A DNA stretch of 64,000 nucleotides from Trichosphaerium sp. ATCC 40318 (Eukaryota > Protista > Tubulinea): contig JALMLS010000484.1 of NCBI GenBank assembly GCA_038496445.1, forward strand, positions 62,001 through 126,000. Direction: 5' to 3'. Below, piece after piece: positions 47,931 to 62,248 of this stretch. The translations under genes and the position numbers were made by a program. The first letter of the stretch is position 1. The number at the start of each line of letters is the position of its first letter. The notes under the pieces are model-generated. The model did no database searches. It was given only the letters and a program-made list of their open reading frames with translations, and was not told the DNA's origin.

Positions 47931-49085
47931 TCACCATTTTTGGTAGCTACTTCTTGAACCTTTTTGGCTTCTGCGTTTTGAGTCGAAGCTCCTATATCTT
48001 ACAGTGTAGTTTCTTTGAGGTTCCTTATATTCGGCGTGGCGTGCCATCCACTTTTTTGACTGTTCTTTGTTAGCGCCAAGAAGCTGTAGCATAAAGTCCG
48101 AATCGACTACCATGCCAAGAGTAAACAAGTTGCCTCTTCTGAAGAAGAAGGCAGAACCGTAGCGACCACTGTTCACGTGATTGTTGAGAACCTGTTCGAG
48201 AGCAACTATATTGTTGTACAGTTCGCTCATGTCAACGTTTCGCTGAAACAAAGTAACCCGTCCAATTTTGAGCATCGTATCGAAGTCAGAAACTAAAAAG
48301 CCTTGTTTCTTCTCAACAAGATTTGCCACATTTGCCAATTGACGTCCAGCTTTTAAGTAGCATCCCATTGAATATCTATGCGAAAACTCGGCCAAATCAT
48401 ACTCGCTCACTACACGTGCGATTAGAGAGAACAAATAATTCATCAAAAAAAAAAACAGTACCTCCTCCGTAATGTTCGACAGGCACGAAGCACTTAAGGC
48501 TGAAGCCCTTACTTCTCATAAATGTAGATACGTTCCAATTAAACCAACAGTTGTCACCGTCGGGTATTTTTAGCATAATCTTAGCGACCATTTCTAGTAC
48601 GATCTCGGAAGGCATGTCAGAAATTGAACCGACGTTGCATCTGCTGCCTAAAATTGAATAATAAGAATTAGAAAACGAAAGAATTGTAAAAAATAGGGCG
48701 AGTTTGTTGACATACCGACGTTCCAGATATAGACAGGTCGCTTTTGCCTGTCTTTTAGGATATCTTTGCGAATGTTTACTGTTTTTTCAGAATTTTTTGT
48801 TTCACGCGCTACTTGAGTACTACGCTGCGTTATGACGTTTGGTTCGGCGTCTTCGTTGTTCCTAGCGTGTTGTTCTTTCTCGTGGTGCTCTTTACAAATA
48901 TCTAGAAGTGTGTGACACGTAAAAGCAAGCTTGCCTCTAGCGTCAAGCAGTTCTAGTAGTCTTTCTATCGGTTTTAACGGTAGAGAGGATAATGTGCAAT
49001 TGTCGTTTGACGCTGCTTCCTCCAGTAGCTTTTTTTGAACCGAGGACATTGTTGTTGTAGGTTTAACTTGTTGTGTGCGTTTCAT
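47931..49085 (-). CDS. Hypothetical protein with F-box-like N-terminal motif, 3 exons
   Basis: LSSLPLKPIERLLELL; two canonical introns (GTATGT...TTTAG, GTACTG...TGTAG) join three ORFs in frame; pseudogene paralog at 14.9-15.6 kb. Confidence 0.75.
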
Positions 49086-50292
49086 TGTAACGAGAATTAT
49101 GTCAGTCTTTTCAGTTCTTTCTTTTTATAAAAATTAGCAAGTTATAAAAGCGTAAATTGCATTGACTGCGACATTAAACCAGAAACGGTAGTTTGTAAAA
49201 TAACCGAAATGTCAAAAATTTGCTAAAAATACCAAAGCACGTTTCATGTAGAGTCAAAAAAAAACATGAACTAAAAAATGTCCTAGACGCTTGTAGTTTC
49301 CCTTATGAACAAGTGTAAGTGGGTGTAAAGCCCAATCGAGATTTTAAAAATTACTAAGCGGAAAATTGTGTTGAGCGTTTACGACTTTTTGTTTACCAGA
49401 CTAAAACCCGTTCATATAGGCTGAAAACAACTTACGTATCCGTTGTAAGGTACAACAGATTTTTTTAAGGGCTCTACACTGAAAAGGTGCGAGTAAACGC
49501 GAAACAATTGTTTAGCTGGCTAATTATTGTTTTATCGCGTAGTAAAAGCGCCATGTTCATTTCAATGGTGTGATGCTGTTTTGGACGGCCGATACAATAT
49601 GAAAGTGCCTCTAAATGCCACTGATGCTGTACCACACTCTTGGGTATATTATTTTGCGACAGTTTGGTGATATAACCAAAAGAAGGTAAATAAACTCTTC
49701 GATCACGTTTTTGTCCTGCAATCTTACTAAAACAGTTTAAAGTAAGCGCTGACGCCATGACATTGTACGGTAGGAAAGAAAATAGGTATTTTACACGAGC
49801 TAACGAAAGACAGTCGATCGAAACGTTACGAAGCATTTTAAGTAGCAACAACAAAAGAATCTCCATTTCTACCGCTAGTAGCAGTGCATTTGCGTATGGT
49901 GCAGTAGAGAAGGCGTTGTATCCTTCATCCAGGTTCAAATAGTTGTCGTTTTGCGCTTGCTTTTTAGCTACCAAGCACTGCCGATAGAGTACGAATAATT
50001 ACGTACAAAGCAAAAAAAAAGAACCTTGTTAGTAGCACGGTTCGCGAACCAAAACACCGCCGAACCCCTTGACCCCGTTCTCACGCATAAACATCGCAAG
50101 CGCAAAGGGTTTATGGGCAGTTTGAAATATGCATTATCTGTATTTGGAGTATTAAAACTGATTTTTCTTTGAACTGAATCGAATTTTACACTTTTTGTAC
50201 ATTTATACTTGTAAAACGAACGTATAAAACGTTCATTAGCACCTGCGTAACGCAGTGGTGCAAATAAAAGCTGATGTTACCAAAAAAATACT

Positions 50293-50334
50293 ATCCCACA
50301 ATTTATTTAATGGATATTTGATCGTGTATTTAAA
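50293..50334 (+). promoter_or_regulatory. snRNA-type promoter: USE/DUSE-like ATCCCACAA plus TATA-like TATTTAAA
   Basis: TCCCACAA (50294-50301) fits the Dictyostelium DUSE consensus WCCCAYAA and resembles the plant USE RTCCCACATCG; TATA-like box at 50327-50334; same spacing in the second copy. Confidence 0.6.
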
Positions 50335-50355
50335 GCAACAGAATAATCATAATAA

Positions 50356-50622
50356 TAACTTTAACTGGCCTTTCAACCCTTACAACGTTGTCTGAATGTC
50401 GCCGCTTCTGACTTTCATCACTAATCCTGAGAATTTACTGAAGTAGGGTGTATGTTGACGCTGTTACCTCTTCGTTACGGGTGTTTAATTAATCGGGTAA
50501 ACAACCTTAATTCCTGATACAGCAATATGTCAACAGCACTAACAGGTAAGGAACTCCTATTACACGGAACTCGACGGGCACCTTCATCCTGATACTGCTG
50601 ACCGGGCTGCAGTGAATTTTTT
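50356..50622 (+). ncRNA. Unidentified structured RNA, copy 1 (~267 nt)
   Basis: Upstream USE+TATA, helices shared with copy 2 including compensatory changes, terminal hairpin followed by AATTTTTTGA. Confidence 0.7.
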
Positions 50623-51145
50623 GATTTAGACCGAGATTCTGTTTTGTAGCCAAGACAATATGAACACGCCTCTATAAATGCTGCTGACGCTAGACCATTC
50701 TCTTTGGGTATATTGTTTAGACCAAAAAAGGGTAAATAAACTCTTCGATCACGTTTAGTCTAAACGGTTTCGAAAAGCATTTTTTTAGTAATTGAAACAA
50801 CGAAGAGGCGCAATACTACTACAGTAGCTTTGCACATAGTGGTCGAGAAGGTATTGTCCTTTCATCCGAGTCAAATAGCTGTTGCTTGTTGTGTACATAG
50901 AGCGACGAAATTGAATTACCTCGCATACAAAGCGAAAAAAAAAGAACTAATAGTATAGTAGCACGTTTGAGACATCATTATCTATATTTGGAGTATTAAA
51001 ACTGATTTTTCTTTGAACTGTATCGATATGTATCTATTTACATTTTTTGTATTTGTAGATTTGTAAAACGAACGTACAAACCGTTCATTAGCCCCAATGT
51101 AACGCAATGGAGCAAATAAAAGCTGATATTACCAAAAAAATGCTA

Positions 51146-51186
51146 GCCCACAATTTATTTAATGGATATTTGAGCGTGTTTATAAA
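51146..51186 (+). promoter_or_regulatory. snRNA-type promoter of copy 2: GCCCACAA plus TTTATAAA
   Basis: Same position and spacing as in copy 1. Confidence 0.55.
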
Positions 51187-51207
51187 GCAACGGAATAATC
51201 ATAATAA

Positions 51208-51475
51208 TAACTACAACCTGGCCTTTCATCGTTACCTCCGATGAATGAACGTGCCGCCGCTCCTAGCTATCTTTACTAATCCTGAGATTTTAAAGGAGAA
51301 TGGGCACTGTTGACTGCTGTTACCCTTCGTTACAGGTGTTTAATTAATCGGGTATCCAGCCATAAATCCTGATACAGCAATATGTCAACAGTGCCGACAG
51401 GTAAGGAACTCCTATAACACGGAGCTGAAAGGCACCTTCATCCTGATACTGCTTGTCGGCAGCAGTGAATTTTTT
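51208..51475 (+). ncRNA. Unidentified structured RNA, copy 2 (~268 nt)
   Basis: Perfect 12-bp helix ggcactgttgac/gtcaacagtgcc, tgctgt/acagca, atcggg/cctgat, ttcatcg/cgatgaa, actgct/agcagt, then AATTTTTTGA. Confidence 0.7.
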
Positions 51476-51971
51476 GATTTATTCAGAATTTTTTTTTGTA
51501 ACAGCGAAAACGCATACCGGAAATAGAAACATACTTTTAGTCCAAGGTTTACAGAATGATGATTGTAGTTAAGTATTGAGAACACTTTTTTCTCAACCGG
51601 TTTGCGGCTACAGGTTTTTAGTGTTCGAGTTTGACACAAAGCGCTAACTATGGATCATGTTTCAACCAACGTTTTCGTGATAACACGCACGTGAAAAATA
51701 CGTGGTCAATTTTAGGTATCGCACTACAAGCTATTTTCCTTCTACTTTCGCCACTACTACGCCAAGGGTATGCTAAGGCGTAACAAAAACGGTATTTACC
51801 TTCAGTTTAACTCAATCAGTTACAAATGCTAACGGCAAACTTCTGCGGTCTCCCACCAAAAGAAAAACAATAAATTGGGGCTAACAAAACCCCAATATAA
51901 TCTCCCGACTGCGATAGAAATGACGACACAGTCTTGAAAGGTCTTTTTATTCTCGTTTAGCACTACCAAAC

Positions 51972-53692
<1,721 letters not shown>

Positions 53693-53894: not shown

Positions 53895-56800
53895 ATGTCG
53901 GCGAATCCGCCCAGACACTTCAATCGGGTGGTACCTCCAAACCATACAAATGTTTCAAAAAGGCCGTTGCCACAACCGAAGGTCCCCAAGTGGGCTAAAC
54001 TAGGCAATAGATCACCTAAGAAATGGGGTAAGCGCCCACCAAAGAAAATGTACATGATGAACAAAAACCGTGCTCTACCTACACCCAAACAACGCCCAAA
54101 GCATGCAAAGTCCCCCAGAGTGCCAAAAAAATTCAATGGAAAGAGACACCCAAAATTCGCTTTAAAGCGACCCAAGACGCCCAAACAGTTTCAGAGACAC
54201 TTTGAAAACTATTCCAGACCACTCCCACAGCCAAAACGGGCGACAGCAATGCGTAGAGTGAACTCTTCTGGCAAATTAGCTTACAACCGCAACAAACTCA
54301 TTGTTAAGCGTTCTATTACATCAAAATTCACAAGAGACGATATGTCAGGCGTGACAGTGCCTTTACCTTCTCATAAAAAGGCAAACAGACCAAAACCTCC
54401 GAAAAAGGGACGCCACTTCGCAATAGGTGGTAGGAGGTACGCTTGATACTAGAGTTAGAATAATTCCGCTACCAAATTTCCTATCTATTTTTTTTTAACT
54501 TTAATAGGCGCTCGCTATCATCAGACAAGTACGCACTATTGTTCCACGATTAAATACGTTCCGCTGCATTTAATAAAATTTCGCGATGTTGGTCATCGCC
54601 TTCTCATGTCATCTTACGCGAGTATAATACGCAAAAACGCTAACTGTACCGTTATAGAGAGACAATGTCAGCTGATTGTGTACCAAAACGATTGCCATCT
54701 CTCATGCAAAACGATCGAGCTACACGAAGCAATACCTCTTCTACTCTTCCAGTAAAGAAATTACCAGAAGCCAGGCCATTGAAACTATCGCGATCATACA
54801 ATAACGTGTACGCGTGTAGAGCACGTAGCTCTTTTTATACTATATTGGTTTAGTGCCAAAATAGAAAGTATAAAGCACCCTTTCCACAAACAAAACAATT
54901 TAATGCAATTTTTTTATTATTTATTTATTTTTTTTTCTAATTCTCTTGTTATTAGTGCCGATAGCGAGGTAATACGATCTTCTTCAGCACCTACATCACC
55001 GGTTCCAAAACGACCTGTAATTCCAAAACGCCCTTTGAAAAAACCTGGCCCAATATCTTCTAGAATTGCTATAGGAGGGAGAGCAGGCGGTGGTTCTGCT
55101 CCGTCATCACCATTTGCTACTGCTGTTGCTAAAAGACAACGTATGAAACATCGTCGTAGTAAACGCAATACAGTGGTGCTAGCATTTCCTTTAGATCCTG
55201 AAGCTATTGGTGAAGGTGGAGAAGGAGGAGAGGAGGAACAAAAATGGCAGAAAGGCGCACGTGGTTAACTTAGAGAGAAGCTTTTTGATGCAATGGTTTT
55301 TTTTTTCCTTTTTTTTTGAAATGATGGTTCAAACTACAAAAAAAAAAAAGGAAAAAAATTATCGTTGTCATTTTTTTCTTCTTATACTAGTTAAAAAGCA
55401 AAATAGCGTGTTCCTTTTTAGTTTTGCCATTTTTTTTTTCAGCTCTACAAAAATTAGTGTTTTTCTATATTTGACGTATTGTATATCTACTAGGCTTTAT
55501 ATTATTATGTATCACCGCACTACTTATGGGCGCTATATTCTATTGATTATTTTTTTTTCTCTGCTGTTGGGTAGTTGTTGACGTTTATCTTTTAGGTTAC
55601 ATCTGCTAGTGGCGAAACACAGTATCTAGGAAATTTGGACTTATCGAAGCTCAATTTAGAAGCGTTTTATCCGAGACCTAAGCACTCATCGTCAGAGAAA
55701 CCTTCTCAAGGGAACCAAAGAAAACATTTAGGTTTGGGATCGGGTATACGCGCACGGTTGAAGAAAAAAAAGGATAGGAAAAAGAAGAGTGCTACGCCAG
55801 CAATGCATATGGCGAATGATATTGCAGATGCAATTGCTCATAATGGTAGTAAGTAGTTAGAGGAACCTTTACGCGTTTTCTTTCATATAATTTTCATTGG
55901 CTTCTACGTGAACGTATTGACCTTTCTACTCTATAGCTGGTGCCGCAACTGCATCATCAAACACGTCCATGCACTCATCTCAAGATAAAGAAGATGACAG
56001 TGCCCTCAAGGAAGCAAATTGGCTTTCTGGTCCAGATGACGAGCGTATACCATGGCCAGAGGTAGCATACAAGCAAAGTGCTTTTCATAAAATTAAATTG
56101 GTTTCTAGACATCAAACCAGGTTACAGCTGAAGCAAGGGCAATGCTTGGCACTGAGTGTATTTCTAAAGGCTGGCATTTAGAATTAGGCACTCCTGGAGC
56201 ACCAACAAATCCTGAACTCGATTTCTTATTTCCAAAAGACGATGTTGCTTATTTTAGTGAAAATCTACTTGGCATGCGTATGTGTTTGACACTTTGGGTG
56301 TATTTGTTAATTTACGCGTTTTTTTAAACAGCTCACGTAAACTATCTTGGAGAAGACCCAGATATGGCTAGCAAGCGTGCTTGCTTGACAGTAGAAGTAG
56401 AGCCGTTTATACATAAGGGTAAAGTAAAGAAATATCGTGCAATCATTAAAACAAAGCGAGTAAGCGATTTATACGTTGCTTTTCATCATGCTAACGTGTT
56501 TTTTTCTTAAAGAGCGCCCAACGCATAATCTTTGATTCAAACAAAGACCACATTAAGTTATTAAAGTCGCTTAACCCTAGTTTGGCTAAATACGTTTTTA
56601 AACAAATACGAGATACACAACTAAGCATAGACTTGGCTAGTTTTGAAAAGAAAGAAATTATGATCAAGTATAAGTTTGGTATTCTTTACGCAAAGGAGGT
56701 AAACACGCTTTACGCGCTGTATTATATTGTGCTTATCACCTTTCTTAGGGTCAAACCGAAGATGAGATGTTTTCGAATTGTCAGCAAAGCCCAGACTTTA

Positions 56801-61732: not shown

Positions 61733-62248
61733 ATGACAACGCTTGCTGCTTTCCCTTTAATAGTGGCACTTGTATGTTTGTCTTTCGCTCAAAATAGCAC
61801 AGATGAGCCAGTACCTACCGTCCCCACTCGTACTCCATGTCCATCAGATTGCTACTGGAACGGCACCTTGTCTAAGTGTCTTTACGCTCCGGATGTGTTT
61901 TGTACGTGTTTTTTTCTCACAAAGTGTTTCGATTTGACACTTTAACAAGGCAATTGTATTTCAAATCACGATGAACAATCATGTCTCAAGCGACCTGGAT
62001 GTAACTATTGTAAAGGGTACGTATAATATTAATATCTTTAAAGCTCTTTAATGACATTGACAAACAGTGGGGTTAATGGGGATACTTGCGAACGTAGAAA
62101 TTGTGGATTATCTTATACAACTTTTTTGACTGGAATCGTTGTTTTTTCTGTCATTGGTGGTATATGTATTTTGGGTATAACAATAGCAACTATTGTAGGA
62201 TTTGTATGTGCTTGTTTTCTTGCTATAAGAAAAGAAGGAGGAATATGA
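61733..62248 (+). CDS. Small Cys-rich type I membrane protein, 3 exons
   Basis: Signal peptide MTTLAAFPLIVALVCLSFA, Cys-rich ectodomain, long hydrophobic C-terminus. Confidence 0.75.

Follow-up and report, generated by a model that had tools for sequence, protein, structure and literature searches.

The 64,000-nucleotide window analysed here (positions 62,001 to 126,000 of contig JALMLS010000484.1, assembly GCA_038496445.1, from Trichosphaerium sp. ATCC 40318; all coordinates below are those of the window) carries a tandem duplication with two diverged copies, A and B, of a probable gene for a structured noncoding RNA (ncRNA). The gene had been proposed from the letters of the DNA (the sequence-only reading) as two copies of nearly equal length, each preceded by the motif CCCACAA about 62 nt upstream and a TATA-like box about 29 nt upstream, and each closed by a terminal hairpin and a run of T. 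All of these features were located again in both copies at the positions proposed, and the predicted RNAs measure 267 and 268 nt (Table 1).

Copies A and B form the conserved portion of an old tandem duplication of about 1.07 kb, in which 49572-50640 corresponds to 50635-51500, as traced by BLAST of the unit against the window and by a sliding-identity profile. About 520 columns of the two copies can be aligned with MAFFT, at a mean column identity of 89%. In the sliding profile, the promoter block is 82-97% identical between the copies, the 5′ third of the RNA 62-75% and the other two thirds 80-88%. Past the terminal T6 run, identity falls to 55% and then to 28% within 20-60 nt. The conserved region begins about 240 nt upstream of the RNA and ends about 20 nt beyond the T6 run, and these limits match the promoter region at one side and the terminator at the other. 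The spacer part of the duplicated unit serves as an internal near-neutral yardstick, by which both copies have been constrained, or homogenised, since the duplication. The 180-240 nt upstream of CCCACAA are better kept than the 5′ third of the RNA, with a peak of 97% at 50137-50176, and the conservation of this upstream block suggests a putative distal enhancer-like element or a gene-conversion tract. An inverted repeat, GAACGT-N5-ACGTTC, lies within the block (50117-50293 and 50961-51145). No third copy was found in the window, either by BLAST at word size 7 or with a covariance model of the core run with filters off, for which the next best match scored 14.5 bits (E 0.11).

The helices of the common fold were laid out by coordinates in both copies, because MAFFT misaligns the outer part of the long helix, and 59 pairs are common to the two. 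Two 5′ hairpins (H1 and H2) are followed by the long helix (H3), which encloses a three-way junction; the fold further contains a closing helix (P1′), the helix H4 and the terminal hairpin H5. Each position of H3 is paired in both copies, with two pairs swapped on both sides (U-A to C-G and G-C to A-U) and a further two altered at a single position. The junction helices GCUGU/ACAGC, UACC/GGUG and AUCGGG/CCUGAU, with a variable 15-nt loop, are present in both copies. Among the 59 common pairs, 50 are unchanged, five show two-sided compensatory changes (two in H3 and one each in H1, H2a and H2b), three show one-sided compatible changes and one is broken (in H4 of copy A). It had been claimed earlier that the pairing of H3 survives two full compensatory swaps around a three-way junction, that other hairpins persist with changed sequence, and that G-U pairs favour the plus strand. 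The first two points are borne out, the further hairpins contributing three two-sided swaps at the 5′ end, and the third agrees with the counts given below. RNAalifold, which had been suggested as a check on the two copies, retained the core helices with three two-sided changes when run on the MAFFT alignment.

Changes affect 14 positions in 118 paired columns. Five double changes were observed where random placement would give 0.78 (P of five or more about 5e-5), figures that overstate the case, the fold having been selected with knowledge of both sequences. In a control in which the 3′ partners were slid by 1-3 nt, pairing fell from 58-59 of 59 to 16-29 of 59, an optimistic contrast, as it uses the same chosen fold. 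Copy A contains four G-U pairs and copy B three, all of which would be A-C mismatches on the opposite strand; the plus strand is therefore the RNA strand.

Transcription of the gene body was found in two runs of one study, X1 and X2, which contain a third and a fifth of the sequence words sampled from the gene body but less than a tenth of those from the 1.2-kb stretch as a whole. When the contigs of both runs were placed on 49000-52600, none fell on the 1.3 kb upstream, the spacer or copy B, and the small-RNA contigs lie inside copy A. Run X2 is demonstrably RNA, because it includes a contig spliced across four GT..AG introns, 45-56 nt long, of the protein gene beginning at about 51975. The small-RNA contigs of both runs carry the same two differences from the genome, 50449 T>C and 50538 A>G. 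In H3 the two nucleotides pair with each other (U-A to C-G), so the contigs provide a sixth compensatory event in a third sequence, which comes from another strain or a near-identical paralogue. The contigs carry no information on ends, strand or abundance, and their absence on copy B is no proof of its silence. Of the two, A is expressed; B, which has an internal T4 run and lacks contigs, may be weaker or decaying. The TTTT of copy B lies about 80 nt into its predicted RNA, where copy A has ATTT.

These results bear on whether the locus is a functional RNA gene at all. A duplicated regulatory segment or a decaying element giving rise to incidental transcripts would account for the low read depth, the lack of excess stability in copy A, the lack of a known function and an upstream block better kept than the 5′ third of the RNA. 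Nevertheless, such an origin is very improbable. First, six compensatory pair changes (five between the copies and one in the transcript variant), together with a strand-specific pattern of G-U pairs, would hardly arise unless an RNA fold were under selection. Second, the limits of conservation coincide with promoter and terminator. Third, transcription is restricted to the gene body.

Table 1. Features of the duplicated locus (window coordinates; plus strand given as +, no strand as a dot)
Feature	Position	Strand	Details
DUSE/USE-like motif, copy A	50294-50301	+	TCCCACAA; -62 from predicted start
TATA-like box, copy A	50327-50334	+	TATTTAAA; -29 from predicted start
Predicted RNA, copy A	50356-50622	+	267 nt; start placed from promoter spacing, end from T6 run
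5′ hairpins H1 and H2, copy A	H1 50374-50390; H2 50405-50443	+	H2 loop of 7 nt constant (CUAAUCC); three two-sided changes relative to copy B
Long helix H3	50447-50459/50529-50540 (copy A); 51303-51314/51384-51395 (copy B)	+	12 bp; encloses three-way junction
Junction helices, copy A	H3b 50460-64/50519-23; H3c 50465-68/50480-83; H3d 50492-97/50513-18	+	
5′ splice site-like block	50543-50551	+	CAGGUAAGG (CAG/GUAAGG); inside a 19-nt stretch identical in both copies; unspliced in X2 contig
Terminal hairpin H5 and predicted terminator, copy A	50594-50598/50609-50613; T6 50617-50622	+	ACUGC/GCAGU, then GAA, then T6
RNA-seq contig cover	50383-50593 (X1 50383-50554; X2 50428-50593)	+	inside copy A only
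DUSE/USE-like motif, copy B	51146-51153	+	GCCCACAA; -62 from predicted start
TATA-like box, copy B	51179-51186	+	TTTATAAA; -29 from predicted start
Predicted RNA, copy B	51208-51475	+	268 nt; internal TTTT 51287-51290; H3 51303-51314/51384-51395; T6 51470-51475
Distal upstream block, copy A	50117-50293 (about -240 to -63)	+	82-97% identical to 50961-51145; candidate enhancer-like element
Upstream block, copy B	50961-51207	+	carries GCCCACAA (51146-51153) and TTTATAAA (51179-51186)
Spacer, duplication unit 1	49572-50116	.	counterpart 50635-50960; 50-72% identity where alignable, large indels; near-neutral yardstick

The region in front of each copy has the layout of a type-3 promoter for RNA polymerase III (Pol III). 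With the start placed from the promoter spacing, the motif at -62 and the TATA-like box at -29 of both copies fall within the ranges typical of this layout, 55-65 nt before the start for an element of the proximal or upstream sequence element (PSE or USE) type and about 25-30 nt for a TATA box. The spacing from the upstream motif to the TATA-like box and on to the predicted start is free of indels between the copies, and the 19-mer that starts with CCCACAA occurs twice in the 64 kb (at 50295 and 51147), compared to 0.02 expected. In dictyostelid amoebae, the Dictyostelium upstream sequence element (DUSE), [AT]CCCA[CT]AA, stands about 60 nt upstream of many ncRNA genes transcribed by RNA polymerase II (Pol II) as well as by Pol III, and a T run downstream of such genes has been read as a sign of Pol III. 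Here, both copies end in a 3′ hairpin of 5-6 bp (ACUGC/GCAGU) followed by GAAUUUUUU, and the T6 run coincides with the boundary of conservation in both. Copy A is free of TTTT before its terminal run (P 0.27 under its own composition and 0.05 under that of the flanks, thus not significant alone), and copy B has one internal T4. The window has no Rfam-recognisable RNA gene, so it offers no snRNA (small nuclear RNA) promoter with which the motif could be compared. From these features, we infer that CCCACAA would be a working promoter element in this organism, that the polymerase would be Pol III and that the RNA would begin and end as predicted.

The same region can be read as that of an Sm-class snRNA gene transcribed by Pol II, in which AAUUUUUUGA would be an Sm-binding site rather than a terminator and the transcript would extend further downstream. 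This sequence matches the Sm consensus RAU(4-6)GR, and in Dictyostelium the DUSE drives Pol II snRNA genes as well. Waibel and Filipowicz are said to have found in 1990 that in plants a USE and a TATA box serve both classes of polymerase. Against an Sm-class gene, no conserved 3′ hairpin follows the site, the identity of the copies being lost there within the distances given above, and the body of copy A is free of T4. From the 10-bp USE-like element to the TATA box there are about 23 bp, a distance that corresponds to plant Pol III genes rather than to Pol II genes. Taken together, a Pol II snRNA of the Sm class is the less likely assignment and is regarded as improbable.

Other DUSE-like motifs occur in the window. 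NCCCAYAA has 15 matches, and a TATA-like box follows at +33 to +35 in both gene copies. A third such pairing is found on the minus strand at 55531, where GCCCATAA is followed by a TATA-like ATATAAAG about 30 nt downstream (box at +30) and, at about 100 nt, by a T5 run; a transcript from it would be only about 35 nt long, and the match may be due to chance. In addition, a DUSE-like GCCCATAA at 50118-50111 on the minus strand is oriented away from copy A, and about 60 nt further on lie a GGTTCGCGAACC palindrome and a T9 run (about 50020-50012). The stretch 50012-50118 may constitute a very small divergent unit of Pol III type; most of it (50037-50116) lacks a counterpart in duplication unit 2.

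Comparison with known RNA families gave no assignment. Searches of Rfam 15 returned no match at the gathering score in the whole window and nothing relevant at E<=10 in a 1.4-kb segment or in two slices of about 290 nt (291 bases), the setting in which the Rfam search filters are most permissive. The matches obtained were at chance level: SpR19 with 15.9 bits in the spacer and sR21 with 13.6 bits on the minus strand, the latter not conserved in copy B. A script search of both copies found no GAUC, ACAGAGA, UGAUGA, GUAGUA, ACUUACC, GCCUUUUAC or AGUCC, in agreement with the claim, made earlier by eye, that the hallmark motifs of U1, U2, U5, U6 and RNase P/MRP are absent. The hallmarks of signal recognition particle (SRP) RNA are absent from the locus as well. 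The significant Rfam match that the sequence-only reading had named as the result that would remove novelty was not obtained.

Individual candidates were rejected as follows. For 7SK, neither copy contains GAUC and Rfam gave no match; 7SK function is defined by the partner HEXIM, whose occurrence is essentially limited to animals and the unicellular lineages nearest to them (Holozoa). For RNase P/MRP, AGUCC and GGAARUC, of the core formed by conserved regions I and V in P4 (CR-I/CR-V), are missing, again with no Rfam match. For the spliceosomal snRNAs (U1, U2, U4, U5, U6, U11, U12, U4atac and U6atac), the hallmarks and Rfam matches are missing and no conserved hairpin lies past the Sm-like site. 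As regards telomerase RNA, neither copy contains a 7-mer of (CCCUAA)n, assuming a telomere of the TTAGGG type; the sole 6-mer is AACCCU in copy A, and no template-like periodic word is common to both copies at a plausible site. Resemblances seen by eye to U1 (at the 5′ end), U2 and U4 (the CUAAU loop) are without backing from Rfam, and no claim of membership is made for them.

These negative results also weigh against the possibility that the RNA belongs, in strongly diverged form, to a known Pol III type-3 family, such as a telomerase RNA of the plant, ciliate or hymenopteran type, a 7SK-like RNA or a variant of spliceosomal or RNase P/MRP type. It has in common with telomerase RNA, 7SK and MRP its size and its external promoter, as well as the closing helix, three-way junction, terminal hairpin and U-tail. 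Furthermore, the literature knows no telomerase RNA for Amoebozoa, and there are short resemblances to U2 by eye (GGCCUUU near the 5′ end and UUUAAU...CUGAUAC). The failure of the ~290-nt slices to match any family even at E<=10, the missing template and family motifs, and the restriction of HEXIM make divergence from a known family an unlikely explanation.

Several unpaired blocks, the most strongly constrained parts of the RNA, are identical in the two copies. They comprise the junction strands UUUAAUUA and AAUAU, the loop CUUCGUUAC, the loop CUAAUCC, a 19-nt block containing CAGGUAAGGAAC and three repeats of AUCCUGA type. Some of these blocks resemble splicing signals. CAGGUAAG, in a block invariant between the copies, is a perfect 8-nt complement to the canonical 5′ end of U1, and three or four branch-site-like motifs (CUGAU or CUAAU) also lie in invariant blocks. 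The predicted accessibility of the 5′ splice site-like block is unremarkable (0.38-0.46 unpaired in the ensemble), so the idea of U1 binding draws its support from the sequence alone; in addition, many possible eight-letter words could be called interesting. A broader proposal, that the RNA belongs to a sizeable undescribed cohort of Pol III small RNAs and may regulate splicing by serving small nuclear ribonucleoproteins (snRNPs) of U1/U2 type as a decoy or chaperone, is put forward as doubtful speculation.

The splice site-like block could also be taken at face value, as part of a spliced-leader RNA or of an RNA gene with an intron of its own (67 nt, bounded by GU at 50546 and AG at 50612 and containing a branch-like CUGAU). 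The near-consensus CAG/GUAAGG stands about 70 nt before the Sm-like AAUUUUUUGA, the supposed intron has GT..AG ends and its size is near that of the 45-56-nt introns of this genome. Both ideas were rejected as barely credible on three grounds. First, the X2 contig runs unspliced through 50428-50593, and the X1 contig extends 9 nt beyond the site without a loose end. Second, the would-be intron is among the best kept parts of the RNA, and the 5′ part of the would-be exon is the most divergent. Third, the words of the RNA are almost absent from 18 other runs that bear the same species label, which is not expected of a leader joined to many mRNAs.

Relatives of the RNA were sought in metagenomes, where pattern scans for homologues gave 0 matches, and through a neighbouring gene, a route that (with HMMER, from the open reading frame (ORF) at 47931-48446 to a contig) led only to a contig of 1.1 kb without flanks. 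The evidence for the family therefore comprises the two copies and one transcript variant. The neighbouring gene is a lineage-specific multi-exon gene on the minus strand (47931-49085), 1.3 kb upstream of copy A and without a Pfam domain. Its largest ORF has a single match among 1.8 billion cluster representatives, a 358-aa protein with 41% identity (E 5e-21) encoded on that 1.1-kb contig, from the Joint Genome Institute (JGI). On the other side, a protein gene on the plus strand (51962-52591, starting at about 51975) begins with a Rossmann-type NAD-binding segment, and in its intron 1 a branch-like CTGAC stands about 20 nt upstream of the AG.

Collectively, these results suggest, with a probability of roughly 70%, that the locus is a tandemly duplicated gene for a lineage-specific structured ncRNA of about 265 nt that is expressed, is probably transcribed by Pol III from a type-3 promoter and would act as the scaffold of a ribonucleoprotein (RNP). 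This agrees with the sequence-only reading, which had proposed a gene of type-3 Pol III layout whose RNA either forms a novel ncRNA class or diverges strongly from a known one, and for which the lack of an Rfam match, the transcription of the gene body and a covariation that fits the plus strand now provide support. In the mechanism envisaged, the plus strand is transcribed, most likely by Pol III, from an external promoter of U6 type (CCCACAA at -62 and the TATA-like box at -29), and transcription would stop at T6. The RNA would fold into two small 5′ hairpins, a long helix closing the three-way junction, a short hairpin, and a 3′ hairpin with an oligo-U tail. Selection acts on the promoter, on the helices by way of compensatory change and on the unpaired blocks that are identical in both copies. 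The most likely action, by analogy with U6, 7SK, MRP and telomerase RNA, would be that of an RNA scaffold in a small nuclear RNP. La or LARP-type proteins would hold the terminal hairpin and U-tail, and the unpaired blocks that do not vary would be sites of protein binding or of pairing with other RNAs. The pattern of constraint, with helices free in sequence and single strands fixed, fits an RNP scaffold that is read by its partners.

Several observations weigh against this interpretation. First, the predicted stability of copy A is no better than that of shuffled sequences (z +1.0), and that of copy B is alike on both strands (z -2.7 on the plus strand versus -3.0 on the minus strand); thermodynamic stability is not convincing as evidence of structure here and adds little. 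Second, the covariation rests on few events, drawn from two paralogous copies and one near-identical transcript variant. Third, the depth of the contigs is low (3.5-5), and they end short of both predicted ends of the RNA. Fourth, the likeness to the DUSE noted in the sequence-only reading holds for position (-62, compared to about 60 nt upstream) but not for enrichment, WCCCAYAA on its own occurring in the window at chance frequency (10 found versus 7.4 expected). Fifth, the promoter evidence from copies A and B is not independent, because they are paralogues, and gene conversion rather than selection could account in part for how alike the 240-nt upstream blocks are. Finally, the scaffold role is reasoned by analogy.

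If confirmed, the locus would add a well-supported new family to the few eukaryotic RNAs made from U6-type promoters, in Amoebozoa outside Dictyostelia, whose ncRNAs are barely charted. It settles no long-standing question by itself. Its usefulness is that two constrained copies can be set against a neutral spacer, that the fold is defined and shows compensatory changes, and that the invariant unpaired blocks point to likely partner sites.

Compared to known type-3 Pol III genes (U6, 7SK, RNase MRP RNA, and plant, ciliate and hymenopteran telomerase RNA), the locus shares several features. First, an element lies near -60, a TATA box near -30 and a T run, the putative terminator, at the end. 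Second, no internal boxes would be needed, and the predicted transcript of a few hundred nucleotides ends in a hairpin and oligo-U. The locus differs from these families in lacking their sequence motifs and Rfam matches, a telomere template, GAUC repeats and conserved regions of P4 type. Compared to the DUSE-driven ncRNA genes of dictyostelids (snRNAs and Class I RNAs), it has in common the motif [AT]CCCA[CT]AA about 60 nt upstream, the T run that is often found there and an amoebozoan-like host, although the motif of copy B departs from the consensus in beginning with G. Class I RNAs are short and restricted to Dictyostelia, with one short terminal stem and an 11-nt motif, whereas the RNA described here, at about 265 nt and with at least six helices, has no sequence similarity to them and was rejected as a member of that class. 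The locus is best regarded as a gene of a new RNA family in a known kind of gene architecture.

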